NCBI GenBank assembly: GCA_038087875.1
Contig: CM075977.1
Coordinates: 47,430,001-47,494,000 of the forward strand
Length of the DNA: 64,000 nucleotides
Direction: 5' to 3'
Source of the DNA: Malacoraja senta
Taxonomy: Eukaryota
In this document: in pieces, positions 21,719-59,991 of the stretch
Numbering within the stretch: the first letter of the stretch is position 1
Layout of the letters: each line of letters starts with the position of its first letter
Notes under the pieces: model-generated
What the model saw: the letters and a program-made list of their open reading frames with translations, nothing else
Databases searched by the model: none
Told to the model about the DNA's origin: nothing
Position numbers and translations under genes: made by a program

Positions 21719-22005
21719 TTTAGTTTAGTTTAGAGTACAGCACATAAACAAGCCCTTCAGCCCAACGAGTCCACACCAACCAGTGATCCCCGCACATTTA
21801 CACAATCCTACACACAGGGGACAATTTACTATTTTTACCAAAGCCAATTAACTGACAAACCTGTACGTTTTTGGATTGTGGGAAGAAACCAGTGCACCAG
21901 GAGAAAACCCCATGTGGTCAGGGGGAGAACATACAATCTCCGTACAGACAGTACCCATAGTCAGGATCGAACCCGAGTTTCTGGCACCAACTCCACCGCT
22001 GCACC
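21719..22005 (-). mobile_element. HE1-like V-SINE
   Basis: (TAAAC)n tail, V-domain, partly deleted head. Confidence 0.8.
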
Positions 22006-22634
22006 AACCTAGCACCTTTGTTCTTTCTTATTCTGATTCACTTTATAACAATACCGTGGAGGTATGGTGACCATACTAATTATTTTTTTGCGTATTTTCA
22101 GACAAAATTAACTTATCGACACCCATAAAAACGAAACCGCTTCATTGCCTGGGAAGGTCTTGTATTACAGTATATATTACTCTTACTAATCTGAAACTAA
22201 TTTCCTTTGAAAAAGTTACCAACCAGGGAGTACAATTCTGCTGAGTGCCACACCATACACATCATGTACCAATGTCCCCACACAACTAATTTTAAGTATT
22301 AGAAGACCCAAGGAAAATATTTTTTTAATATTACAAAACACAATATGAAGTGGAAGACATTTGCAGGATATGCAGAGGGCAATTGTAAATACTGTTCTGA
22401 AACCCCCAGTGCAAAATCCAAGTGAATAGGACGTAGTAAATGAAAGTCATCTGGCAGAGTATCTTAATATTGGCCAAAATACAGCGATTATAAAATGAAG
22501 GATCATTGCATTTACAGGGCCTGCTTGGCCTCTTTCTGTGAAAGTTGCAAGCTGAGAGTCATGGCTCCAAGGAGTCTGGACCCCAGATGGAAGTTGATGA
22601 TAAGGAGAGGTCCATTTTACTTTGTTAAAATGTA

Positions 22635-23170
22635 TGAGGGTTTGCAGAAAGAGATAAGGTCTGCAAATGCACAGTGGGATTGGTTATAGAAGGGGGTGTG
22701 TAAAGGTATTGTTAATAATGTTGCAAGGTGGTTGTACTGCTGCTTGATGATTGGCTGAAGTGTGATGCCTTGTTTGAATTGTTTATACTACCTGGGAAAA
22801 TGTTGCATTACTTAGTCCTTCCAGAAGCTTCTGTAGAAACATTGTAATGGGATGCTTTGTAATTGGGTTAGGGAACCGTCAATAACTGTATAATGTGATC
22901 GATATGTGTGATTGGTTTGTAGGAGTTGCCTCCTCCAAGTAATGTCATGCCCTTAGTTTGGAAGGGTTTAAGAGGGTGGGTAATTCTTTGGGGTGTGTCG
23001 GTTGACTGTGACTTCGGTTCTGTTCGCACGAGATATTGTTGTCTTGTGTGGGTGAATCGGCAACTGTCCCTGCAGTTTGTTCTTCAATAAAGTAAGGTTT
23101 TGGAACCAGAGTTTGACTTCGTATTTGACTAAACCAGACTAAGGGGATAAGTCTTGAACCGGAATTTACA
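22635..23170 (+). mobile_element. Probable solo LTR (ERV1- or Gypsy-type)
   Basis: TG...CA ends; 4-bp TSD TGTA at 22631-22634 and 23171-23174; reverse CCAAT (GATTGG) at about 22910; TTTAAG TATA-like motif at about 22966; AATAAA at about 23086. Confidence 0.55.
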
Positions 23171-23233
23171 TGTACATATCTGATAATGTTTAGCACTGCG
23201 TGAGACTGATAGATCAGATGTGTACAAGACTCA

Positions 23234-23945
23234 GGGCAGCACAGTGGCACAGCAGTAGAGTTGCTGCCTAACAGAACCAGAGGCCCGGGTTCCATCCTGA
23301 CCAGTGCTGTCTATGCAGAGTTTGTATGTTTTCCCTGAGAGCACGTGGGTTATCTCCAGGTGCTCCGGCTTCATTCCACATTCCAAAGACGTATAGGTTT
23401 GTAGGTTAATTGCAAATTGTTCCTAGTGTGTAGGATAGAACTAGTGTATGGGTGATTGACAATAGACAATAGACAATAGATGCAGGAGTAGGCCATTTGG
23501 CCCTTCAAGCCAGCATCGCCATTCAATGTGATCATGGCTGATCATCCCCAATCAGTACTCCATTCCTGCCTTCTCCCCATGTCCCCTGACTCCGCTATCT
23601 TTAAGAGCCCTATCTAGCACTCTCTTGAAAGTATGCAGAGAACCGGCCTCCACCGCCCTCTGAGGCAGAGAATTGCACAGACTCACAATGTGTGAAAAAG
23701 TGTTTCCTCATCTCTGTTCTAAATGGCTTACCCCTTATTCTTAAACAGTGGCCCCTGGTTCTGGACTCCCCCAACATCAGGAACATGTTTCCTGCTTCTA
23801 GTGTGTCCAAACACTTAATAATCGTACATTTCAATAAGATCCCCTCTCATCCTTCTAAACTGCAGAGTATACAAGATTGGTGGTCGGCGCGGACTCAGTG
23901 GGCCGAAGGACCTGTTTACCATGCTGAATTTCTAAAATAAACTAA
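23234..23945 (+). mobile_element. HE1-like V-SINE split by a CR1 3' fragment
   Basis: Head gggcagcacagtggcacagcagtagag; the SINE resumes at 23875 and ends with a TAAAC-like tail. Confidence 0.8.
23459..23874 (-). mobile_element. CR1 3' fragment with (ATTGTCT)n tail
   Basis: ORF2 end (GESRTRGHCLRIRGKPFRTEMRK); GACAATA repeats on the plus strand; 5-bp TSD GATTG at 23454-23458 and 23875-23879. Confidence 0.85.
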
Positions 23946-24656
23946 AGGCAAGCTTTCCTTTTCATTTTTCTTTAATTCAAGGCATGGAAGGGTGTTTTTA
24001 TATCACTGCAATCTTTGGACATTGAAATGGAAGAAGTGTTTAGCTCGAGGTAGCACAGTATCCTACGTCTTTTATCCTGATGTCTGACTACATTTTGATT
24101 ATCCCCAGTACCTGAAAGACTATTCTAAATGTTTAGTGCATTCAAAATAAAAGAGATCCCTTTTGATGTTAGTTTTCAAATATACTTTTGCAATTGTGTA
24201 TGCTTTGTTCACTACTCTCTCAATGTCTGGGCTTATCTTATAAATAACTTAAGAACCACGGGGAATTTAAAAGCTTTTGACTTGGCAGTGTTGTGGTATT
24301 TTGCTATGAAATTAAAGCTTTCTCTTCCTGTCCGCTAGTTTTTACATGTCGATGTAAAAGAAATTCAGGGCTGTCAACTCAAGCATTTTATCAATGCTGA
24401 TAGCAATAAGGTTTGTCTAAAACGTCAATAAAATTAAAATAAAATGATACGATATGTTCTTTAAAAGCATAGCAGTATAGAGCAGAAAAGGTATCCTTAA
24501 TTAGAGAGTCAATGGACTGAATTAAGATATAAAGCATTAAAGTAGATATTGGAAAAATTTGTTGAAGCAAGGGATAATTAAAACTTGGAATGTTTTACCA
24601 AAATGACAAATCAATAGAAATGCTTTAATTTTTATAGAAGCTATCAACACCTCTTA

Positions 24657-25125
24657 GAATCACACAGCACAGAAACAGGTCCTTCGGCCCAACCTACCCA
24701 TGCTGACTAGGATGCCTCATCTACACTATTCCCACCTGTGTGCATTTGGCCCATATCTCTCTAAACCTTTCCCATCCATGCATCTGTCTAAATATCTTTT
24801 AAATGTTATTATCATATCTGCCTCAACTACCTCTTCTGGTAACTCGCTTAATATACTCACCACCTTGTGTGGAAAAAGTTACCCCTCAGATTCCTATCAA
24901 ATGTTTCCCCTCTCACTTTAAACCTATGTCCTCTGGATAATGAATCTCCTGTGCTGAGCAAAGACTCTGTGCATTCACGCTATCTATTGCCCTCCTTATA
25001 CACCCCAAAATGATCACCCCTCATCCTCCTGCACTGCAGGGAATATAGTTCTAGCCTGCCCAACCTTTCCCTGCAGCTCATTCTCTGGTAACAACCTCGT
25101 AAATCTTCTCTACACTCTTTTTCAG
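24657..25125 (-). mobile_element. CR1/HER1-type 3' fragment
   Basis: Homologous to 9880-10285. Confidence 0.75.
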
Positions 25126-25699
25126 CTTAAAAACTCCTCAGAGTTCTACATTATGACCACTAGTTAATAGCATTCTCACCCTAGAGTTAGCAGTTTGTCA
25201 AAATACTGAAGACAAACAAAAAAAATCAGGAGTTGGTCATTTGGCCCGACTTCACTTATCAGTATGATCATTGTTGATCCTTTCTCTCGGTAACATATTC
25301 CCACTCTTTCCCCATATCCGTTGTTTCCTTTTGTTTCTGGAAATCAATCTATCTTCTGCTTAAATATATTTGGAGATTTGACCTCCACAGCCTTATGTAG
25401 TAGAAAATTCTATGGGTTCAACACCCTGTGTGAAGTGATTTATTCTCATCTTAGTTCTAAATGTCTTACCCCCATATCCTGAGATGGTAACTTCAACCAG
25501 ATAGCACAATCTCCCACTCTCAACCGCAACCCCCTCTCTAAGAGAAACCACCCCCTGCATTTAATCTCTCGCGCTGCAACAGAATGTTTCAATGAGATAT
25601 CATCTAATACTTCCCAAACTCTAGTGAATAAGACCTAGTCAAATCAATGCCTCCTCAACAAATGATCCTCCTTCACAGGGATCAAGCTTGTCAAAGAAG

Positions 25700-26955
25700 C
25701 AAAAAACAATCTGCTGCCAAAACTCATTGGGTCAGCATCTAGGGAGAGAAATGCTCAGATGGTGTTTCGGGTTGCAATTCTTCTTCAAGACTAGAGTAGA
25801 GAGGAGATAACTGGTAGAAAAAGTTGAGGGGAAGGGGTAGTGCAAGAGTTGGTAAGTGATTGGAGGTGAAACAAGGAACTGCAGATGCAAGTTTACAAAA
25901 ATAAAAAAAGACAAAGTGCTGGAGTAACCCCACGGTCAGGTAGCATCTCTGGAAAACATGGATAGGTGAAGTTTAAAACTTTTTTCAGATTCTGAAGAGC
26001 TAACGAGTAATAAATGGTTCCAGGGAAGAAGCGGCTGATTGGCAAATGAAACATGTGGGAGAGAGGTGATGATAGTTGTAAAGACTAGACATAATGTGGA
26101 GAAGATGAAGGGCTGCTGATGGCGGAATTAGGTAAGCAAGGATGGCGAGGAGGGAAATGTAGAACGAAAGGGAGGGATGATGGGATCTGAGAGGGGGGAA
26201 GAGGGAGGAGTGGGGGGCAAGGAGTAGAGGGGGACCCAGAGGGGATAGGGTTATAGACAATAGGCAATAGGTGCAGGAGACCATTCGGCCCTTCAAGCCA
26301 GCAATGCCATTCATTGTGATCATGGCTGATCATCCACATCAGTACCCTGTTCCTGCCTTCCCGCCATATCCATAGAGCATCTTTAAGAGCTCTATCTATC
26401 TCTCTCATGAAAGCATCCAGAGAACCGGCCTCCACCATCTTCTGAGGCAGAAAATTCCACAGACTCACAACTCTCTGTATGAAAAGGTTTTTCCTCATCT
26501 CCGTTCTAAATGGCTTACCCCTTATTCTTAAGCTGCGGTCCCTGGTTCTGGAGTCCCACAACATCGGGAACACCTATTCTGCCTCTAGCTTGTCCAAACC
26601 CTTAATAATCTTATATGTTTCAATAACATTCCCTCTCATCCTCCTAAATTCCAGAGTATACAAGCCCAGCCACTCCATTCTATCAACATATGACAGTCCC
26701 GGCATCCTGGGAATTAACCTCATGAACCTCATGAGGCTGCACTCCCTCAATAGCAAGAATTGGTTGGTAATGAGGAGGTGGAAAAGGGCTACTGGGGGGG
26801 TGGGGGGGGGGGACAAAGTGTACAAAAGGGAGCTGGTAGATCAATTGACAAGAGGATGGGGTGCAGGGGTTACCTGAAATTGGAGAATTAAATGTTCATG
26901 CCATTGGGTTACAAGATACCCCAACAGAACACGTGATGTTGTTCTTCCAGTTTGC
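25700..26955 (-). mobile_element. Cluster of degenerate Penelope fragments interrupted by a CR1 fragment (about 26253-26760)
   Basis: Penelope terminal motifs (25730-25790, 25870-26000) and GIY-YIG C-terminal remnant (26870-26955); CR1 ORF2 end (RRMRGNVIETYKII; RGKPFRTEMRKNLF). Confidence 0.7.
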
Positions 26956-27049
26956 TAGAATCTCAGTGGTCCCTGGCATTTTTTCTAAATTGCATTTGTT
27001 CTATGGGAAGCATTTGATGTTGATTTAATTCCCTCTCAGCACATAATCG

Positions 27050-27340
27050 AGTCTAATGATCCTGTGGACTAGTGAGGGAGTGCTGTACCATCAGAGATGC
27101 ATTTTCAGATGACACATTCACCAAAACACTATCTGCTTTCTCATGTGAATGTAATCACAGTGCTTCATCATGATTTCTTAGCCAATATTCACTTCTGAAA
27201 GGGATTAGCTGCTCATTATCACAATTGCTGTTTGTAAGAGTTTATATTGTGCAAATTGAATGCAGCATGATAAACTCTGATATTGCTTCTTAAATATTTT
27301 ATTGGCTGTTCTTTCACATATCTTTACAGAGATCTGAAAG
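27050..27340 (+). mobile_element. Ancient Deu-domain SINE (AmnSINE1/SacSINE1-like), degenerate
   Basis: tgagggagtgctg..ttcagatga.., gccaatatt.., cattatcacaattgctgtttgt..tgtgcaaattg, ttattggctgt; recognised from memory of the DeuSINE consensus. Confidence 0.6.
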
Positions 27341-28585
27341 GCATCATTTCATCTCCAGGTGCTTTTTTCTTTCTTTGAGGCAAAAAAAGCAAGTCAAACG
27401 TTACACTCCAGGCACAGGTGAACCAAATAGAATGAGAATAAGTGGTGTTAACCTGAAGCTAGCATCTAAAGAGAGAAAATTGTTTGTAAGATTGTAGTTA
27501 TTGGCACAGGTTAGGTTTTTCATTCAAGGCGACACTAATCATGGATTTCTGGGAATTGGAAATATCATTGTGGTGAAGGAGATACATTTCTGACAGCGAA
27601 GTTAAGGTAATTTGTTAACGCTGAACAGAAAAAGCATTCAGCTGAACATTTGAATGGTTTTCCTGAAGAGTCACCCTTGCTTCAACTGAATATTAGCAAC
27701 TGAATATCAACTGAAAACTCCAATTTATACCGTTTGTATGATTCTGACCTCACAATGCTGCAGTATTTATCAGAAAAATGCCCAGAGAAAATCCCCAGAA
27801 ATGATTCGGCATCCAACAAATCATTTTGCAAGCATTTAATACAAAATGTAAGTTACAAAATGTTTTAAAAATTGATTGCCCAGCCATTCCTTAAGGATGA
27901 ATGAGATTGTGTGCAATCTTATTCAATTCTGACACGAGTTAAATCCCACATTTAATCATTCACCAGGACCACTCATCATCTCACAACTTTGCCTCCATTG
28001 TCTGTGGAGCAGGAATAATTATGTTTGACTTTCTTACTCAGACACGTGATAGCTCAAAGGTTGTTGTTGCCAGAATGTGTCCTATTCATCCCCTACCCAC
28101 AACTTTGCTCCATAGATCAATCATGGTCATCTGTTCAGGCAACATTGCCATTCTTTATGTTTTAAAGATGGTTCTTGCCCCTTGTGTATCATATTTAATA
28201 TACTCACATCATCCAAAAATAAATCCCCAGCCTTGCCTCAGCTACTTTCTACAGTCCCATTCCATTCTTATAGCCTCAATCTCTAATTGCCTTCCATCTT
28301 TGCCTTCTATTTTTGAAACTGTCAAGACACAGTAATCTGAACAAACTTTAAATGGCCTCTCCTCGATTCTTCTTTCCAACATTTGCTTTTATTTTGCATC
28401 ACCGTCAAGAAAAACCTTTGGGGCATTTCAGATGAATGCATTGTTTTTATTGTTACTTTCGTTCCTTTCAACTGGGGGCTCAAGTGCTTGATTGTGTGTC
28501 CAACTCCATAATAATTGTTATTCATCCTGGTTTTGGATACCCAAAAAGGGAACCTCTTTTGGCTTCATGTAAAAAGATAGTTTTA

Positions 28586-50576: not shown

Positions 50577-51693
50577 AAAAAAATAAAAAATATATTTTTA
50601 TTGGAAGCGTAAACACATAATAGCAACACGGTTTGTTTATCAATTACATTCATACACAGCTTCTATTCTTTTTATAGAATTTTTTAAAAGATAGAACTGA
50701 AAAGAAAGATCTATAAACTAATAGAAAGGAAGGGATAAAGAGAGAGAGAAAAAAAGAGAGAAAGAAAAAACAAAAAACAAAAAACAAAGAAAATTACCAA
50801 TAACAGTTTTGGAGATAGGTCCATAGATTATAAGGCGTAGTTATTCATCCAATCCTGAGCTCGGGTTTCAGTCCAGCTTCTGTGTTGAACCAGTTTACCT
50901 CTTTAAAAAAATCAATAAATGGAGACCATATTCGAACAAATAGTTCTGGTTTGTCAATTAAGACAAGTCTAATTTTTTCCAAGTGTAAGGTCTCAGACAT
51001 TACTGTAATCCACATTTTAATTGTGGGGGTTGTTGGATTTTTCCAAAATCTTAGTATTAATTTTTTCCCAGTGATTATACTGTAATCAAGAACATTTCTT
51101 TGATTTGTTGTAAGTTTTATACTTTGTTCTGATATTCCCAATATTATTAATTTTGGATCGGGATCCAGTTGAATATTAACAACTTCAGAAATAATTTAAA
51201 AAATGTCCATCCATTTTTTTAAAATTTTTATGCAATTTACCAAGGTATGTGTAAATTGGGTTCTAGGTACTGACATTTATCACAGATAGGTGAGATATTT
51301 GGAAAAACTCGGTTTAATTTTGTTTTGGAGTAATTATAATCTATGTAGTACTTTAAATTCTATTACAGAGTGTCTGGCATTTAACGAACAGTAATGTATA
51401 TGTTGTAAGCTTTCATCCCATATATCCTTCGTTATGGATTGAGCCAATTCATTTTCCATGCTTGTCTGTGTGGTTCTGTCGACGGGACCTCAGTATCTAA
51501 CAGGATATTATAAATGTAGGATATTAATTTATCTGTGTTAGGATGTTTATTCAAACATTCATCGAGGATTTCTGGGTCCTTAGTTCTATGCACCTGTGTG
51601 TGTGATTTTATATAATCTCTAAGTTGCAAGTATCTAAAAAAAATATTTTGATGTAGTCCATAATTCTGTTGTAGCTCCTGGAATGAAAGAAGG

Positions 51694-51756
51694 ATTTTAC
51701 TTCGGAGTCACGTGAGTGACTACGTGAAGAAGCCCCGTCCAGCCGCACACGCGTCA
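51694..51756 (+). repeat. DIRS left terminal repeat
   Basis: 51694-51730 is the reverse complement of ICR 56483-56519; 51721-51756 is inverted with 56713-56748 (one mismatch). Confidence 0.9.
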
Positions 51757-51942
51757 TTATCGATCAGACGCATAGCGTTCATGACCGTGTGTGGAGGAGC
51801 AGGAGCTCCTCCAGCCGGTGAGTAAAACAAAAGTAAAACAAAAGTCGGAAGGTAAGTGGGTTACTTTTCACTTACAGGAGCGTTTCCTTCCCGTTTAGAC
51901 GTGTTGGTGGAGCTCCACTCAAGTTTATTATGGAGAAATGGG

Positions 51943-53300
51943 ATGGAGAGGCGGCCAGGGACGCACCGTAGTAAAACCCCAGATCCTAAGGGTAGCGGGC
52001 GTCAGTCAGGGGAGTCAGTGGCAGCGAAGCCATTAACTCCCGTTGTGGTCGAATGTGCGTTAAACCGCCGGCGGCGGGGCGCAAGGCTGAGAAAAAATAT
52101 ATATATATATATATATATATATAATAATGAATAAATAAAAATCGTCCCGACCCGTAGACTCAGATGAGTTAGACCCGGAGGTATGCCCTCCTCAGGCAGG
52201 AAAGAGTATTACACTGCAAGGACCAAAAACTTTATAACTCCTTATGGGGCAGATGATTTGTAAAGAACCCCAACAGGAGGATTTAAGTCGGTGTTGGCCA
52301 ATGAAGTATAGCACAGGAGGTGCCTTGGAACAGGCACAAGGGTGGCCTACAGGAGAGCCATCAGTGCCTGTGCAGAAACATTAAAGAGGTTGGCCTACAG
52401 GAGAGCCAGTGCCCAAAAATGCCAGAAAAAAGGCAAGTTATGTGTTGGCCTATTGGAGAGCCAGTACTAGAAATGCCTGAACAAAAGGCAGCACAAACGT
52501 GCAATGATAAATGTGCCAGCACCGACAAATATAAAGAGTAAAAATAATGAAGCGTTGGCCTAGAATTGAGCCAGCGGCAGCAACACCTGAAGCAGGGCTG
52601 CCTGTCCGTGGGCCTACAAGAGAGCCCGCGCAGGGGGAATCTGGCAGAGACTTACCTGAAACAGGGGAGCCAGAAATTACCCAACATAAAAATGAATATC
52701 TAGATTTAGATGATGATTTAAATGAGGACAAGAGCCCATTATCAGAGCCACAAATGTTCCAAGGCTGGCACAAAACTTTGCTGTTCCCAGAGTAACAGGG
52801 GAACCTTTGAGAGAGGAAATAGCTATGACTATAAATTATCTACTCTCCAATCAGCCCCAGGAATTAACCATGGATTAAACTATCAAAAAATATTAGACCT
52901 GGGAAATTGTAGCAGTTACAGCAGTGAATAACTTGATATGGGTAATTTGAGCAGTGGTTTACGCTCACAAGAATTGAAATTACACAAGTGCTGAAATTTT
53001 TGGGGTCAGCGGTTTGGATGAAGGTTATATATCGTATTCACAACAAAATGCCTTAGCACTCATGTGTAGTGCGCACTTTGAAATAAATTGTATTCATAAA
53101 AATGCAATAAGACCAAATATTCATCCTAAGTATGCAGGCTCTGCAAACCATCCAATATACAAATGCCTAAATCTGTTTTGGAGAAAATCTAGCAACGAAA
53201 CTAAAGGATCACCTATGCTGAGCAGAGCGGTGAGAAGGCAGTATCCCTACAGGCGAAATGTGGTGCTGGAGAAGGAACAATCCTATCATTCTCGTATACA
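51943..53300 (+). pseudogene. DIRS ORF1 (gag-like), disrupted
   Basis: C-terminal NALALMCSAHFEINCIHKNAIRPNIHPKY..FGENL-like block resembles DIRS gag; multiple stops/frameshifts and an (AT)n insert. Boundaries approximate. Confidence 0.55.
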
Positions 53301-53429
53301 CGTTGACGTGCTGCACCGAGGATACGTGGAGGTTACAATATGCCTACTAGAAGGACAACAACTGCCGGTGGAAAACCCCGAGGTTAGGGGGCTTGGTCTG
53401 GTAAGAAACACAACAAATGTTTCACACTC

Positions 53430-54890
53430 ACAAATAGGGGGAAGGTTACGATTCTTCCTAAAAGAATGGCAATCAATAACAAATGATTCATTTATTCTAT
53501 GTAGCATTGTAGGATTCAAAATTGAGTTCTCTCCACGTTTGGATCCTCCAATTCAGCATAATTCAAACTGGTCACAGATTTTTTCAAAGGAAGAGAATGG
53601 GTTGATCAAAGGAGAATTTAAAAATGTTATGCAGAAAAGGATGATATAAATGTCAGTAGAACAACACCATCAGTTTGTGTCAAATATTCTCCTAGGAATA
53701 TTCTCCTAGAAAAGGGATGGTGGACGTAGAATCATTTCCGATCTGACAAATCTTAACCTTTATGTACAATAGAAACATTTCAAAATGGAAACATTTACTA
53801 ATGCCATTTAGCTAGTCACAAAGAATGCTACAAGGCAAGCATAGATCTGCAAAATGCATATTATTCTGTGGCAATGCATGGTAATGATCAAAGATATTTG
53901 AAATTTAGATGGATGAGTCAGTTATGGCAATTTAAAGCATTGCCCAATGGTCTGATTTCAGCACCAAGATTATTCACTAAATTGCTCAAACCAATTTTAG
54001 CTCTGTTAAGAGCTGAGGGCCATGTATTAATGGCTTATTTAGATGATATCCTCATTGTAGGGGACACTTTGGCTGCTGCAAAATTGTCAGTATCCAGACA
54101 AACACATTTTGAGAAATTAGGTTTCATTATTCACCTACAAAAATCTAAATTGTTACCAAGCAAAAGATTGATTACCTAGGGTTCACAATTAACTCCGAAC
54201 ACATGGTAATCACTTTGCCAAAAGATAAAAAGCTGCAGTTAATTGAAGGTTGCATAAAACTCATTAACGAGGACACACCTTCAATTAGAGAAGTGGCAAG
54301 CTTGCTAGGCAAATTAATTGCAGGGTTTCCAGCGGTCACGTTTGGACCATTGCATTATCAATGTTTACAGAGAGCTAAGGTACAAGCGTTAAAAATGAAT
54401 AGAGGGCATTTTGATAGGCCCATGAAATTAACAATTCAATCCATTACAGAAATAGAATGGTGGATTAACAATGTTTCTAATGCTTCCAGAAAAGTTCTGG
54501 TAGAAACACCTTCCGTCACTCGACAGACTGATGTAAGTGCGCTGAGTTGGGGCGCTATTAACATGATTTCCAGCTGTGGAGGTAGGTGGAATGTGAATGA
54601 AGTACCTTTGCTGGGAAAAACTGGGAATCAATTACCTAGAGCTGTTAGGCGCATTTTACGGCCTTAGAGCTTATTGCACTGATATGGGAAATGTGCATGT
54701 TCAGGTACAGGTTGACAATACTACAGCTGTAGCATACATAAATCACATGGGTGGTATAAAATCAGAATCATGTGATAAATTGGCAAATGAAATTTGGACC
54801 TGGGGTATTGCCAGAAAAATGTGTCTGTCAGCAATATATTTACCAGGTAAAAATTAATACAATTGCAGACAAAAGATCACGTAAATTTAA
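53430..54890 (+). pseudogene. DIRS reverse transcriptase plus RNase H, disrupted
   Basis: IGGRLRFFLKEW, HFKME, IDLQNAYYSV, ALPNGLISAPRLFTK, AYLDDIL (54036-54047), TDVSALSWGA, INYLELLGA, VDNTTAVAYINHMGG, ADKRSR. Confidence 0.9.
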
Positions 54891-55334
54891 TGATAATACA
54901 GAATGGAAGTTAAATCGGAAAATATTCACACAAATTATCACACAATTTGGAATGCCAGAAATTGATCTGTTTGCATCAAGATTGAACCACCAGTTGCCTA
55001 AGTATGTGTCATGGGAACCTGATCCTGGAGCAGTAGTGGTGGATGTTTTCTCGCTACATTGGGGTGGTATGTTTCTGTATGTTTTTCCACCATTTTGTTT
55101 AATCCACAAATGCATACAGAAAATTAAACAAGATTCAGCCTCAGGGATTTTGGTAGAACCAGATTGGCCTACACAGGTATGGTACGCACTGGTGTTAAAA
55201 ATGGGGGGAAAAAAAAAAGAAAAAAAAAAACCCTTATGGTTATTCCAAAGCAGATTAAATTGCTTGTACACCCTGTGACTAATGAATCACATCCTTTACA
55301 TAATCGTATTGGTTTGTTGATTTGCAGATTCTAA
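54890..55334 (+). pseudogene. DIRS phage-type DNA N6-adenine methyltransferase-like domain
   Basis: EW.L....F, PEIDLFASRLNHQL, DVFSLHW, YVFPPF (55078-55095), PDWPTQVWY; frameshift at the poly-A run near 55210-55230. Confidence 0.8.
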
Positions 55335-56315
55335 GAAGGCCATATCTTGGAAAAAGATTATCAGACCGTACGGTGGATGTTATGAGAGCAACCTGGAGGA
55401 ATAGTACCCAGAAGCAGTACATTTCCTAAATAAAGAAATGGGAGGTGTTTTGTTCAGGAAAGAATATTGCATATAACACAGCAGAAATTTCAGATGTAAT
55501 AGAGTTTCTTTCAACTCTACATTATGAATTGAAATTAAATTATAGTGCAATTAATACTGCACGAAGTGCACTCTCTGCATATTTAAGCAGTAAATCAGAA
55601 CAAACTCCAATTGGAGCACATCCTTGGGTCTGTAGGTTTATGAAAGGAATTTTCAACTCTAATCCTCCCAGACCCAGGTATACAGAAATTTGTAATGTAA
55701 AAGATGTACTGATGTTCCTAAGGAATTGGAATCCAGTTGAAACTCTGTCATTATCCAAAATTACCATGAAATTGATTATGATCATGGCATTAGTTTCAGC
55801 ACTGAGTTCAAACATTACAGAAACTCAGAATTGATGGAATGAAAGTGGGGCAAAATGCCGTGACATTCTATGTCCATGATTTACTGAAGTAAAGTAGACC
55901 TGGGTTCACAGGATGCAAGTTGGAATTTTTAGCATATCCTACAGATTCACGACTGTGTGTAGTAACATATGTGAAATGTTACATAGAAACAACAAAAGTT
56001 TTAAGAGGCGCCGAATTGGCATTTTTTATTAGTCATAAAAAGCCTCATAAGAAAGTGTCAACACAAACAATTTCACGATGGTTGAAACAGGTGTTGAGAT
56101 ATTCAGGTATTGATACTGATAAATTTAAATCTCATTCCACCAGGGCGGCATCAACATCAGCGGCCAGGGATTTAGACGTGCTAATAGACCTTATTCTCAT
56201 GGTCGCAGGATGGGCAAGTGAACAGATGTTTCACAAGTATTACCACAAGGAGATTAAAGATCTAAGAGGGTTTGGTGATGCCGTGCTGGATACAGTATTA
56301 AATCCCCCATTATAA
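55331..56315 (+). pseudogene. DIRS tyrosine recombinase, disrupted
   Basis: WRNSTQKQY, YSAINTARSALS, HPWVCRFMKG, LCVV, TISRWLK, HSTRAASTS (56133-), AGW....F..YY. Confidence 0.9.
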
Positions 56316-56482
56316 TAAATGGGTCTAATTTTGTTACTTTTATTAAAATAAATAAAACCATTAACTGATTACATTCAAATGTTGTGGTTATGCATTGTTG
56401 ATTGTGCTTACTCAAATAGAGTCAATCGATGCAGTGAACACCTGGATTTGAATCCACGGTGTGAAATCACAGAGCTTTGAAA

Positions 56483-56596
56483 TCTTCACGTAGTCACTCA
56501 CGTGACTCCGAAGTAAAATAGTAAGATTAAACGAGAACTTACCAAGTTTGAAGTTTGATCTTTATTTTATGAGGAGTAACGTTGAGGGATTACGTG
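56483..56596 (+). repeat. DIRS internal complementary region (ICR)
   Basis: Reverse complement of the left end joined through AAT to the reverse complement of the right end (56743-56822). Confidence 0.92.
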
Positions 56597-56712
56597 CCCT
56601 CTGCTCCCACCCTCATAAAAGGATCAAGCTGGTAGTTCTAAGTCTTTATGCATCTTACTATCATACTTCAGTAATTATCGTCTGTGATTGTCACTCCGCT
56701 GCTTTGAAAGAT

Positions 56713-56822
56713 TGATGCGTGTGCGGCTGGACGGGGCTTCTTCACGTAATCCCTCAACGTTACTCCTCATAAAATAAAGATCAAACTTCAAACTTGGTAA
56801 GTTCTCGTTTAATCTTACTATT
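56713..56822 (+). repeat. DIRS right terminal repeat with 3' extension
   Basis: First 36 nt are inverted with the left repeat; last about 80 nt are complementary to the ICR. Confidence 0.9.
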
Positions 56823-57715
56823 CCCTTTCGATATAGGTGTCCCACTTTTGTAATTCCATAGTTTTTCCATTTTGCAAATCCTTTATCTAATACGGACAGT
56901 TTAAATGAAGGGTTATTTAAGATAGGAAGAAGAAGTGATAAATTATCCAATTTTAAAGTCTTTTTTAATTGTTTCCAGGTTCGCATACCACTATGTATTA
57001 TCGGGTTTCCACTATAAGTTTTTTAAATCAATTTTGTAGGTGTTAACAAAATCGTGCCAATTTCAAAAGGTAGGCAGTCCTCTTTTTCCATATTTAACCA
57101 ATCTGGTTGTTGATCCAGATCCTCCAACCAGAAGTTCATATTTTTGATATTAACTGCCCCAAAATAAAATAGAAAATTTGGTAAAACTAATCCACCATTC
57201 ATCTTAGATTTACACAGGTGTTTTTTACTTATTCGATGGTTCTTGTAGTCCCAAATAAAACTTGTAACAATAGAGTCAAGTTAAAAAAAAAAAAATGTTG
57301 GAAGATAGATCGGGATTGATTGAAATAAGTACAGTATTAGTGGGAGGAAAGTCATTTTTATGGCATTAATTCTACCAAACATTGAAATGGGGAGTGTTTT
57401 CCAATATTGAATATTCTTATGTAATTTATTGAGTGGGGGAGGAAAGTTTGATTTAAATAAAGACGCATATTTCTTAGTCACGTAAATACCAAGGTATTTA
57501 AACTTTTCGTAGACTATTTTAAAAGGAGATTTTTGCAATATATATGGGTTTGGTTCCGTTACTGGCATAATTTCACTTTTATTCCAATTAATTCTATATC
57601 CCGAGAATGAGCCTAATTGCGTTTAATAAATTCGGAATACTAGTTTCTGAATTTGTGATGAATAATAATACATCATCTGCATATAAATACATTTTATTAA
57701 CTGTATCTTTAGTAT

Positions 57716-59991
57716 GTTTTGGGGAGCACTTCGGGTCCAGTGATCACAATACCATTAGTTTCAATATAATTATGGAGAAGGTCAGAACTGGACCAAGGGT
57801 TGAGATTTTTGATTGGAGAAAGGCTAACTTTGAGGAGATGCGAAAGGATTTAAAAGGAGTTAATTGGGACATTTTGTTTTATGGGAAGGATGTAGTAGAG
57901 AAATGGAGGACATTTAAAGGTGAAATTTTAAGTGTACAGAATCTTTATGTCCCTGTTCGGTTGAATGGAAAGAGTAATAATTGGAAAGTGCCATGGTTTT
58001 CAAGGGAAATTGGACATGGTTCGGAAAAAGAGAGAGATCTACAATAATTATAGGCAGCATGGAGTAAATGAGGTGCTTGAGTATAAAGAATGTAAAAAGA
58101 ATCTTAAGAAAGAAATTAGAAAAGCTAAAAGAAGATATGAGGTTGCTTTGGCAAGTAAGGTGAAAGTAAATCCAAAGGGTTTCTACAGCTATATTAATAG
58201 CAAAAGGATAACGAGGGATAAAATTGGTCCATTAGAGAGTCAGAGTGGACAGCTATCTGCAGAGCCAAAAGAGATGGGGGAGATATTGAACAATTTCTTT
58301 TCTTCGGTATTCACCAAGGAGAATGATATTGAATTATGTGAGGTAAGGGAAACAAGTAGAGTAGCCATGGAAACTATGAGGATCAAAGAAGAGGAAGTAC
58401 TGACACTTTTGAAAAATATAAAAGTGGATAAGTCTCCAGGTCCTGACAGGATATTCCCTAGGACATTGAGGAAAGTTAGTGTAGAAATAGCAGGGGCTAT
58501 GAAAGAAATATTTCAAATGTCATTAGAAACGGGAATGGTGCCGGACGATTGCCGCATGTTGTTCCATTGTTTAAAAAGGGTTCTAAGAGTAAACCTAGCA
58601 ATTATAGACCTGTTAGTTTGACGTCAGTGGTGGGCAAATTAATGGAAAGGATACTTAGAGATAATATATATAATCATCTGGATAAACAGGGTCTGATTAG
58701 GAACAGTCAACATGGATTTGTGCCTGGAAGGTCATGTTTGACCTCTTGAATTTTTTGAAGAGGTTACTAGGGAAATTGATACGGGTAAAACAGTGGATGT
58801 TGTCTATATGGACGTCAGTAAGGCCTTTGACAAGGTTCCACATGGAAGTTTGGTTAAGAAGGTTCAATTGTTGGGTATTAATAGTGGAGTAGCAAGATGG
58901 ATTCAACAGTGGCTGAATGGGAGATACCAGAGAATAATGGTGGATAACTGTTTGTCAGGTTGGAGGCCGGTGACTAGTGGGGTGCCTCAGGGATCTGTGT
59001 TGTGTCCACTGTTGTTTGTCATATACATCAATGATCTGGATGATGGTGTGGTAAATTGGATTAGTAAGTATGCAGATGATACTAAGATAGGTGGTGTTGT
59101 GGGTAATGAAGTAGATTTTCAAAGTACAGAGAGATTTAGGCCATTTGGAAGAGTGGGCTGAAAGATGGTAGATGGAGTTTAATGCTGATAAGTGTGAGGT
59201 GCTACATCTTGGCAGGACAAATCAAAATAGGACGTACATGGTAAATGGTAGCAAATTGAGGTATGCAGTTGAACAGAGGGATCTAGGAATAACTGTGCAT
59301 AGGTCCCTGAAGGTAGAATCTCATGCAGATAGGGTGGTAAAGAAAGCTTTTGGTGTGCTGGCCTTTATAAATCAGAGCAAGAGTATCGAAGTTGGGATGT
59401 AATGTTAAAATTGTACAAGGCATTGGTGAGGCCAATTCTGGAGTATAGTGTACAATTTTGGTCGCCAAATTATAGGAAAGATGTCAACAAAATAGAGAGA
59501 GTACAGAGGAGATTTACTAGAATGTTGCCTGGGTTTCAGCACCTAAGTTACAGAGAAAGGTTGAACAAGTTAGGTCTTTATTCTTTGGAGCACAGAAGGT
59601 TAAGGGGGGACTTGATAGAGGACTTTAAAATTATGAGAGGGATAGACAGAGTTGATGTGGATAAGCTTTTTCCATTGAGAGTAGGGAAGATTCAAACAAG
59701 AGGACATGATTTGAGAATTAAGGGACAAAAGTTTAGGGGTAACATGAGGGGGAACTTCTTTACTCAGAGAGTGGTAACTGTGTGGAATGAGCTTCCAGTG
59801 GAAGTGGTGGAGGCAGGTTCGATTTTATCATTTTATAAATAAATTGGATAGGTATATGGACGGGAAAGGAATGGAGGGTTATGGTCTGAGTGCAGGTAGA
59901 TGGGACTAGGTGAGAGTAAGTGTTCGGCACAGACTAGAAGGGCCGAGATGGCCTGTTTCCGTGCTGTAATTATTATATGGTTATATGGTTA
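57716..59991 (+). mobile_element. 5'-truncated CR1 LINE (end of endonuclease, RT, 3' UTR)
   Basis: GSSDHN, KSPGPD, NYRPVSLTS, SKAFDKVPH, GVPQGSVL, YADDTK; (TTATATGG)n tail; TSD TAGTAT at 57710-57715 and 59992-59997; few frameshifts. Confidence 0.95.

Follow-up and report, generated by a model that had tools for sequence, protein, structure and literature searches.

In this report, we focus on an element of the DIRS1 type that lies at positions 51694-56822 of a 64,000-nucleotide stretch of the Malacoraja senta genome (hereafter the window: contig CM075977.1 of assembly GCA_038087875.1, positions 47,430,001 to 47,494,000 of the forward strand). The element interrupts the open reading frame (ORF) 2 tail of an L1-like retrotransposon and measures 5129 bp with both of its flanking ATT trinucleotides. 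It has the cis-architecture of the DIRS1 type, it retains broken remnants of the expected protein domains, and its filled site is flanked by two ATTs where the empty site holds a single one. Most of its frame-breaking lesions that could be compared with other copies turn out to be the common state of the family. We consider it likely that this DIRS1-like element was already coding-dead when it inserted into the older L1 ORF2 tail, and that it was mobilised in trans.

The element and its host sequence

The features of the locus are as follows; the abbreviations used are ICR, internal complementary region, and ITR, inverted terminal repeat.

51432-51693, minus strand: host, downstream part of the interrupted L1-like ORF2 tail
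51694-51696, plus strand: left ATT, the shared trinucleotide, from target or element (the empty site holds a single ATT)
51697-51756, plus strand: left terminus and left ITR (in the published convention, which counts the ATT, divergent part 51694-51721 and conserved part 51722-51756)
51757-53339, plus strand: 5' region, the expected location of gag, with a CpG-rich start and no recognisable ORF
53340-55331, plus strand: pol remnant (candidate ATG at 53340; reverse transcriptase about 53650-54200; RNase H-like about 54450-54854; methyltransferase-like 54856-55331)
55328-56315, plus strand: tyrosine recombinase remnant (SAM-like N-terminal part; catalytic part with HSTR and KYY motifs)
56483-56596, plus strand: ICR (left ICR 56483-56519, right ICR 56517-56596)
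56597-56712, plus strand: spacer between ICR and right ITR, holding a degenerate sense-oriented junction copy (56623-56669)
56713-56819, plus strand: right terminus (conserved ITR 56713-56747, divergent ITR 56748-56775, right extension from 56776; in the convention that counts the ATT the extension is 47 nt, to 56822)
56820-56822, plus strand: right ATT, directly outside the terminus
56823-57743, minus strand: host, upstream part of the interrupted L1-like ORF2 (YADD box, thumb region)

Termini, ICR and junctions

The ICR carries both ends of the element, joined through a single ATT. In a direct comparison, the reverse complement of its 114 nt reads as the right end (56743-56819, 77 nt), ATT and the left end (51697-51730, 34 nt), with agreement at 114/114 letters, as the first-pass annotation of this DNA had proposed. 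A repeat search recovers the same arrangement as two perfect inverted pairs (56517-56596 with 56743-56822, 80 nt, 100%; 51694-51730 with 56483-56519, 37 nt, 100%), together with an imperfect ITR pair (51713-51756 with 56713-56756). The complementarity between ICR and termini collapses directly beyond these limits on all four sides, and within the window the terminal 31-34-mers are present solely at their own terminus and in the ICR, the chance expectation being 0. The two ICR halves overlap on AAT (56517-56519), which is the 'circular junction' of the literature. The conserved part of the ITRs is 35 nt long with 1 mismatch (1 mismatch in 70 nt), a CpG-type change in the right ITR when judged against related sequences in the loose ends of contigs, while the divergent parts, 28 nt each, match each its own ICR half.

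At the borders, the left junction reads ...gaaagaagg-ATT-TTACTTCGG and the right junction ...AATCTTACT-ATT-ccctttcg, so that ATT stands directly outside both termini. This is the arrangement that is known from DIRS1-like elements, in which the ICR halves overlap on a 3-bp circular junction and integration is a recombination between the junction trinucleotide and an identical genomic one, with no target-site duplication (TSD) (PMC3266345). In the same survey, 23/28 annotated DIRS1-like elements start and end with NTT, most often ATT.

When the minus strand of 56470-56822 is folded as single-stranded DNA, an 80-bp stem is predicted between the right terminus and the right ICR half (-110 kcal/mol, z = -18), and the left ICR half is left over as an adjacent template. 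The arms of this right pair lie 146 nt apart and those of the left pair 4.75 kb apart. The predicted fold corresponds to the splint geometry of the Cappello/Poulter-Goodwin model.

The spacer holds, at 56623-56669, a degenerate sense-oriented copy of the joined ends, in which about the last 33 nt of the right end are followed by a trinucleotide and then by 6-7 nt from the start of the left end. Its local alignment score is 29, against 15.3 +/- 2.3 for shuffled sequences (maximum 25), and its 10-mer ATCTTACTAT (56652-56661) occurs only in the right end, the ICR and the spacer, where 0.22 occurrences would be expected in the window. The motif is kept in two related elements, L001 and L002, which come from other assemblies and were fetched through recombinase pieces 51-67% identical to that of the window, and pairing between it and the middle of the ICR is possible over 18 nt (89%). 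A relic of a split direct repeat of the PAT/Ngaro kind is one conceivable origin; alternatively, the motif might serve as an extra recombinase or priming site.

The host L1 and the empty site

Joining 51696 to 56823 removes 5126 nt, that is, the element with one ATT, and although this length is not a multiple of 3, the operation restores an uninterrupted minus-strand L1 ORF2 tail. The restored frame over the joint reads ..GHLYRKGI|LLSFQELQQNYGL..FFRYLQLRDYI, and in a longer reading ...GHLYRKGI|LLSFQELQQNYGLHQNIFFRYLQLRDYI... The upstream host ORF matches residues 727-837 of human L1 ORF2p among the PDB sequences (E=2e-20), with a YADD box readable farther upstream, and on these grounds the host reads as an older, 5'-truncated L1-like copy; its flank pieces gave no match in Pfam, and the L1 identity comes from the PDB sequences instead.

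To compare copies, Logan contigs of the best-matching organism, A (runs X1 and X2), and of organisms B and C (runs X3 and X4) were aligned to the window with a minimum identity of 85%. Each organism A run contributed about 22,000-28,000 contigs of roughly 130 nt; the depths given below are summed k-mer depths of these short contigs, not copy counts, and come from the best-supported rows. One organism A contig joins 51693 to 56820 with 3 shared letters, which is exactly the predicted GAAGG-ATT-CCC, and other, commoner organism A contigs have the same joint with one letter different at the third position. The joined contigs stem from further copies of this L1 family and act as paralogous empty sites. 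The empty site that had been reconstructed beforehand (gaaagaagg-ATT-ccctttcg) is thus borne out both by the restored L1 frame and by the joined contigs. ATT is thus present once in the ICR, once when the site is empty and twice when it is filled, and these counts fit the DIRS model invoked in the first-pass annotation (ICR-templated circularisation, then a recombinase crossover at a shared trinucleotide). Integration without a TSD beyond the shared trinucleotide holds at the one insertion examined.

Coding remnants and their lesions

The first-pass annotation had called this a complete element with reverse transcriptase, RNase H, a methyltransferase-like domain and a recombinase. Broken pieces of the reverse transcriptase, RNase H and recombinase are there, with a putative methyltransferase-like piece; completeness holds for the cis-structure, whereas the coding parts are all broken and gag is unrecognisable. 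The reverse transcriptase and the recombinase are above the Pfam cut-offs (RVT_1, 53868-54176, 39 bits versus 29.6, E=9e-10; Phage_integrase, 55920-56312, 28.7 bits versus 27.1, E=1.3e-6), and the HSTR and KYY motifs are readable in the catalytic piece of the latter. The other two are weak in Pfam. The RNase H-like piece matches RVT_3 at 54597-54854 with E=0.06 and aligns with the RNase H part of DIRS-type pol proteins; the methyltransferase-like piece (54772-55275) matches PCIF1_WW (21 bits, E=3e-4) and Dam (18 bits, E=2.5e-3), both under the cut-offs, and shares 46-52% identity with the corresponding part of the long pol homologues and 63% with the L002 ORF. No ORF piece has an rve/DDE integrase in Pfam, and the recombinase piece has no match among PDB sequences.

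An exhaustive HMMER search with the 154-amino-acid piece of reverse transcriptase and RNase H found 3359 relatives, none above 59% identity, among them pol proteins of 700-1180 amino acids. For the recombinase piece, the closest match has 67% identity and was found in other assemblies, the protein collections searched excluding the proteins of this genome. Overall, the nearest proteins found are 48-67% identical.

In the region where gag is expected (51757-53339), there is no ORF, no Pfam match and no similarity to ORF1 of L002. The missing gag is probably a matter of decay; gag is poorly conserved in the DIRS1-like group. This region contains, at 52339-52627, five copies of a motif of about 22 nt (GGTTGGCCTACAGGAGAGCCA, 68-100% alike) spaced by 48-110 nt, each of which holds a small TGGC...GCCA dyad.

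That all the ORFs are broken, as had been stated from the sequence, is confirmed. When DIRS-type pol proteins of 700-1180 amino acids are aligned onto the element by tblastn, the homology passes through frames 1, 3, 2, 3, 1 and 3, which corresponds to at least five frame changes (about 53825, 54161, 54613, 54855 and 55200-55235). Four in-frame stops are found in pol (53647, 53707, 53770 and 53809), and a 2-nt length difference at about 53352 shifts the candidate ATG, which stands just before it at 53340, out of frame. Two stops (about 55428 and 55890) and one frame change (about 55798) interrupt the recombinase. An assembly error behind the frame breaks was considered and rejected, since the short-read contigs show the same states.

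Behind the candidate ATG lie two donor-like sites that are in phase with it (GAG|GTTAGG at 53382/53383 and CTG|GTAAGA at 53400/53401). The recombinase frame, which has no ATG (ILRRPYLGK...), begins exactly in phase with a strong acceptor-like site (TTGTTGATTTGCAG|, ending at 55327). These candidate splice sites are read from the sequence only; no donor-acceptor joint is found among the listed contig joints, which are apparently from DNA contigs.

Lesions shared with other copies

The family is extremely abundant in organism A, where the summed word depth over the element is 10^4-10^5. Five of the frame-breaking length differences, located by comparing the frame changes of the protein homology with the contigs, lie exactly at sites where the copies vary in length. 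Protein homology served to set the direction of each lesion, and the state of the window is the majority at every one of the five sites:

Break at about 53352: window state 86% of depth in X1, 71% in X2
Break at about 53825: window state 77% in X1, 71% in X2
Break at about 54161: window state 60% in X1, 55% in X2
Break at about 54613: window state 81% in X1, 86% in X2
Break at about 55798: window state 99.9% in X1, 84% in X2

The unbroken state is a minority at each site, with 0.1-45% of the depth. The stop at 55890 is private to the window, all other contigs having a sense codon there. A lesion gained at this locus would leave no trace in the contig data, and this stop fits that expectation. 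The first-pass annotation had suggested asking whether disabling mutations are common to several copies: the five frame breaks are, and this stop is not. Because the broken state of the window holds the majority of the family depth, the data support the view that these five lesions were inherited from a defective source lineage, rather than acquired in place.

Contigs of organisms B and C are 95-99% identical to the element at only about 3x word depth. Few copies in closely related organisms, runs of low coverage or carry-over between samples could each account for this low depth. Their use as an intact reference was dropped, a contig of organism B having a frame-breaking length difference of its own near 54098.

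Age of the copy and identity of its ends

Two estimates bracket the divergence that the copy has accumulated on its own. There are at least 29 positions (0.57%) at which the letter of the window is absent from all other contigs, which gives a lower bound for private divergence. Compared with the longer contigs of organism B, there are 72 differences in 3834 positions (1.9%), an estimate on the upper side, as it includes the changes of B itself. In addition, 37% of the aligned X1 contigs are at least 99% alike. From these comparisons, the copy looks young, with a private divergence of 0.6% to about 2%.

This bears on the match between the ICR and the termini, which show 0 mismatches in 228 nt in spite of the broken ORFs, as had been claimed. 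The probability of finding zero mismatches in 228 nt is 0.27 at a divergence of 0.57%, 0.10 at 1% and 0.013 at 1.9%. The perfect match is thus unremarkable given the low private divergence, and no special homogenising mechanism is needed to explain it.

The observed-to-expected CpG ratio is 0.98 in the block of ICR and terminus and 1.06 in the first 400 nt, compared with 0.35 in the coding part, a pattern that fits a lineage in which selection was kept on the cis-elements only. Moreover, a compensated 1-nt length difference separates subfamilies at two complementary positions, 56544 in the ICR and 56794 in the right terminus. In the window, both positions show the longer state, and the shorter state is found at both sites in 16-26% of the organism A depth and in the organism B contigs, at the ICR in organism C, and also in L001 and L002. 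Such a paired change is evidence that ICR and terminus are copied one from the other.

L001 and L002 allow a comparison across families. Between the window element and these two, nucleotide identity is much higher in the ICR and termini (86-94%) than in the coding sequence (69-75%). In both, the ICR is centred on ATT, and an ATT also follows the right end of L001; L002 is damaged at both ends. The ICR and right terminus of L001 are parted by an insertion of about 4 kb of other sequence (L001:990-4990), at the place that corresponds to 56619-56652 of the window, and these two arms are only 92.5% alike. In the rest of the 64-kb window, no other copy was found, either with the terminal 31-34-mers at 3 mismatches or by blastn of the whole element.

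History of the insertion and alternative explanations

The history that we favour starts from a defective source lineage, which would have passed on the five frame breaks while reverse transcriptase and recombinase came from other copies in trans. Following the published model, the minus-strand cDNA would fold so that both ends anneal side by side on the ICR, which would template and join the missing ends into a double-stranded circle, and the circle would then recombine with a genomic ATT through the recombinase of the element family, leaving no true TSD. After insertion, only about 0.6-2% of private changes would have been added, including the stop at 55890, and for this reason the ICR and the termini would still match. 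The supply in trans is supported by the combination of inherited lesions with a precise insertion at ATT and rebuilt ends. That the copy was coding-dead at insertion is shown in part by the shared lesions, and in part we infer it. In Dictyostelium, the ICR of DIRS-1 is essential, the cDNA intermediate is mostly linear and single-stranded, and the reverse transcriptase can act in trans (PMC7192593); what was shown there is trans reverse transcription to cDNA, not a complete cycle of trans-mobilisation. Of the two explanations offered by the first-pass annotation for the intact ends, trans-mobilisation of a defective copy thus gains from the five lesions common to the family, and hairpin-mediated conversion becomes unnecessary.

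One alternative is that of an autonomous copy which decayed in place, all its lesions dating from after the insertion. The stop at 55890 and the 29 or more private substitutions were indeed acquired by this copy alone, and four pol stops and two frame breaks lie outside the copy comparison. We find this alternative unlikely: five of the frame-breaking lesions are majority states of the family, about 12 disabling lesions in 3 kb exceed what a private divergence of 0.6-2% predicts, and the ICR and termini are intact at 228/228 positions. The copy could also be old, with its ICR and termini kept identical by gene conversion through a hairpin or cruciform. The perfect 80-bp inverted repeat, with its arms 146 nt apart and its strongly stable predicted fold, would be a suitable structure, but the left pair, a poor substrate with its 37 nt and its arms 4.75 kb apart, is equally perfect. 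Since the low private divergence already accounts for the absence of mismatches, and the ICR and terminus of the older relative L001 have drifted to 92.5% (even if an insertion parts its arms by 4 kb), we regard such conversion as quite improbable. Finally, the two flanking ATTs might be a 3-bp TSD produced by a staggered cut, instead of the core of a recombinase crossover. For one filled site with the same trinucleotide on its two sides, both models predict the same picture; the duplication reading is nevertheless very improbable, because the ICR holds exactly one ATT between the ends, which assigns the trinucleotide to the junction of the element, because the same ATT is found in the ICRs of L001 and L002 and after the right end of L001, because a tyrosine recombinase and no DDE integrase was found, and because NTT, most often ATT, delimits most of the published DIRS1-like elements (23/28, as cited above).

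Several observations nonetheless weigh against the trans-mobilisation of an already dead copy. The evidence on the lesions is based on depth, and they are seen site by site, without linkage on single copies; it covers the five frame breaks, and neither the four pol stops nor the break at about 54855. The organism B contig with its own break near 54098 is a further complication, and no fully intact partner copy has been demonstrated, the unbroken states being minorities of 0.1-45%. The true private divergence is bounded, not fixed, by the best-supported contig rows, and the family might have a CpG-poor coding part by nature. As for the target, the left flank of L002 is not ATT and the last 14 nt of its right end are absent; ATT targeting in the family rests on the window copy, L001 and the literature.

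Relation to known elements

The element has the reverse transcriptase with RNase H of the Ty3/gypsy-related type, the recombinase without DDE integrase, the ITRs, the ICR with its 3-bp junction and the TSD-free integration of the DIRS1-like group; the gag-like first ORF was not found. In the published terms, it has no left extension, a divergent ITR of 28 nt, a conserved ITR of 35 nt, a right extension of 47 nt and an ICR of 37-80, for 5129 bp. These are nearly the dimensions of LgDIRS3, an element of the mollusc type (5133 bp, 30, 36 and 49 nt, ICR 42-86; PMC3266345, Table 3), and they are near those of LgDIRS1 and AcaDIRS1/2. The mollusc-type LgDIRS3, LgDIRS1 and AcaDIRS1/2 have, like the window element, ATT/ATT/AAT as start, end and junction and no left extension, and the similar size of the divergent and conserved ITR parts, described as a peculiarity of molluscs (PMC3266345), is also found here. 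This likeness is one of architecture only, drawn from published dimensions and not from sequence, and the window copy differs in being coding-dead and in having no recognisable gag.

DIRS-1 of Dictyostelium discoideum likewise combines inverted, non-identical terminal repeats with reverse transcriptase, RNase H and a tyrosine recombinase (PMC7192593). Its ICR is exactly complementary to both extremities over 33+55 nt, compared with 37+80 nt in the window element, whereas its ITRs are about 300 nt long, compared with 63/110 nt here, and the junction trinucleotide of the DIRS1-2 entry (PMC3266345, Table 3) is TTA/TAA and not ATT/AAT. Among vertebrates, the DrDIRS1 group, XtDIRS and AcDIRS belong to the same superfamily and share the domain order and the logic of the 3-bp junction (PMC3266345, PMC9210276), but the published elements have a conserved ITR of 100-150 nt and mostly GTT/TTT/CTT junctions, in contrast to the 35 nt and the ATT of the window element. 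PAT and Ngaro are also tyrosine-recombinase retrotransposons with an internal repeat that copies the joined ends; their junction is in sense orientation (A1-...-B1A2B2) and they have no ITRs, whereas the functional junction copy of the window element is antisense, and a sense-oriented one exists only as the degenerate relic in the spacer.

The class is known and the family may not be, as the first-pass annotation had it. A readable junction, ATT and TSD-free integration are already published for DIRS1-like elements, and the element counts as a new member of this class, which may also represent a new family.

Other features of the element

In organism A, the ICR and right terminus (56474-56871) have 8-17 times the word depth of the interior (52000-56400), in excess of the two-fold increase expected if contigs align twice to complementary parts. 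This excess would reflect either other DIRS families with near-identical cis-ends, or many derivatives that are 5'-truncated or internally deleted. Several contig joints of the deletion type are observed, e.g., 52169 to 55730 and 53486 to 56555. The contigs also break at two simple sequences, an (AT)n microsatellite at 52097-52125 and an A-rich run, GGGGGGA10GA11, at 55205-55231. The latter coincides with a frame change in the methyltransferase-like region.

Implications

The readable junction and the ATT crossover confirm the published model and add nothing to it; the useful part is the result on shared lesions. Taken further, it would mean that a lineage with at least five inherited frame breaks, in reverse transcriptase, RNase H and recombinase, is the majority form of a very high-copy family, and that its copies still insert precisely at ATT, their ends newly rebuilt. 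We give this broader proposition an even chance. If true, it would be natural evidence that the whole DIRS cycle, from reverse transcription to ICR-templated end repair and recombinase integration, can run in trans, and the sequences sufficient in cis would be the termini, the ICR and perhaps the 5' region. In such a lineage, only the cis-elements would be under selection, and the contrast between intact, CpG-rich termini and ICR and a coding part low in CpG agrees with this. DIRS elements can account for much of a giant animal genome, e.g., 26-30% in a caecilian (PMC8498967); if most of this DIRS fraction derives from coding-dead, trans-mobilised lineages, copy number would say little about the number of active elements, and the dynamics of the family would be like those of long and short interspersed elements (LINE/SINE) or of autonomous and non-autonomous pairs of long terminal repeat (LTR) elements.

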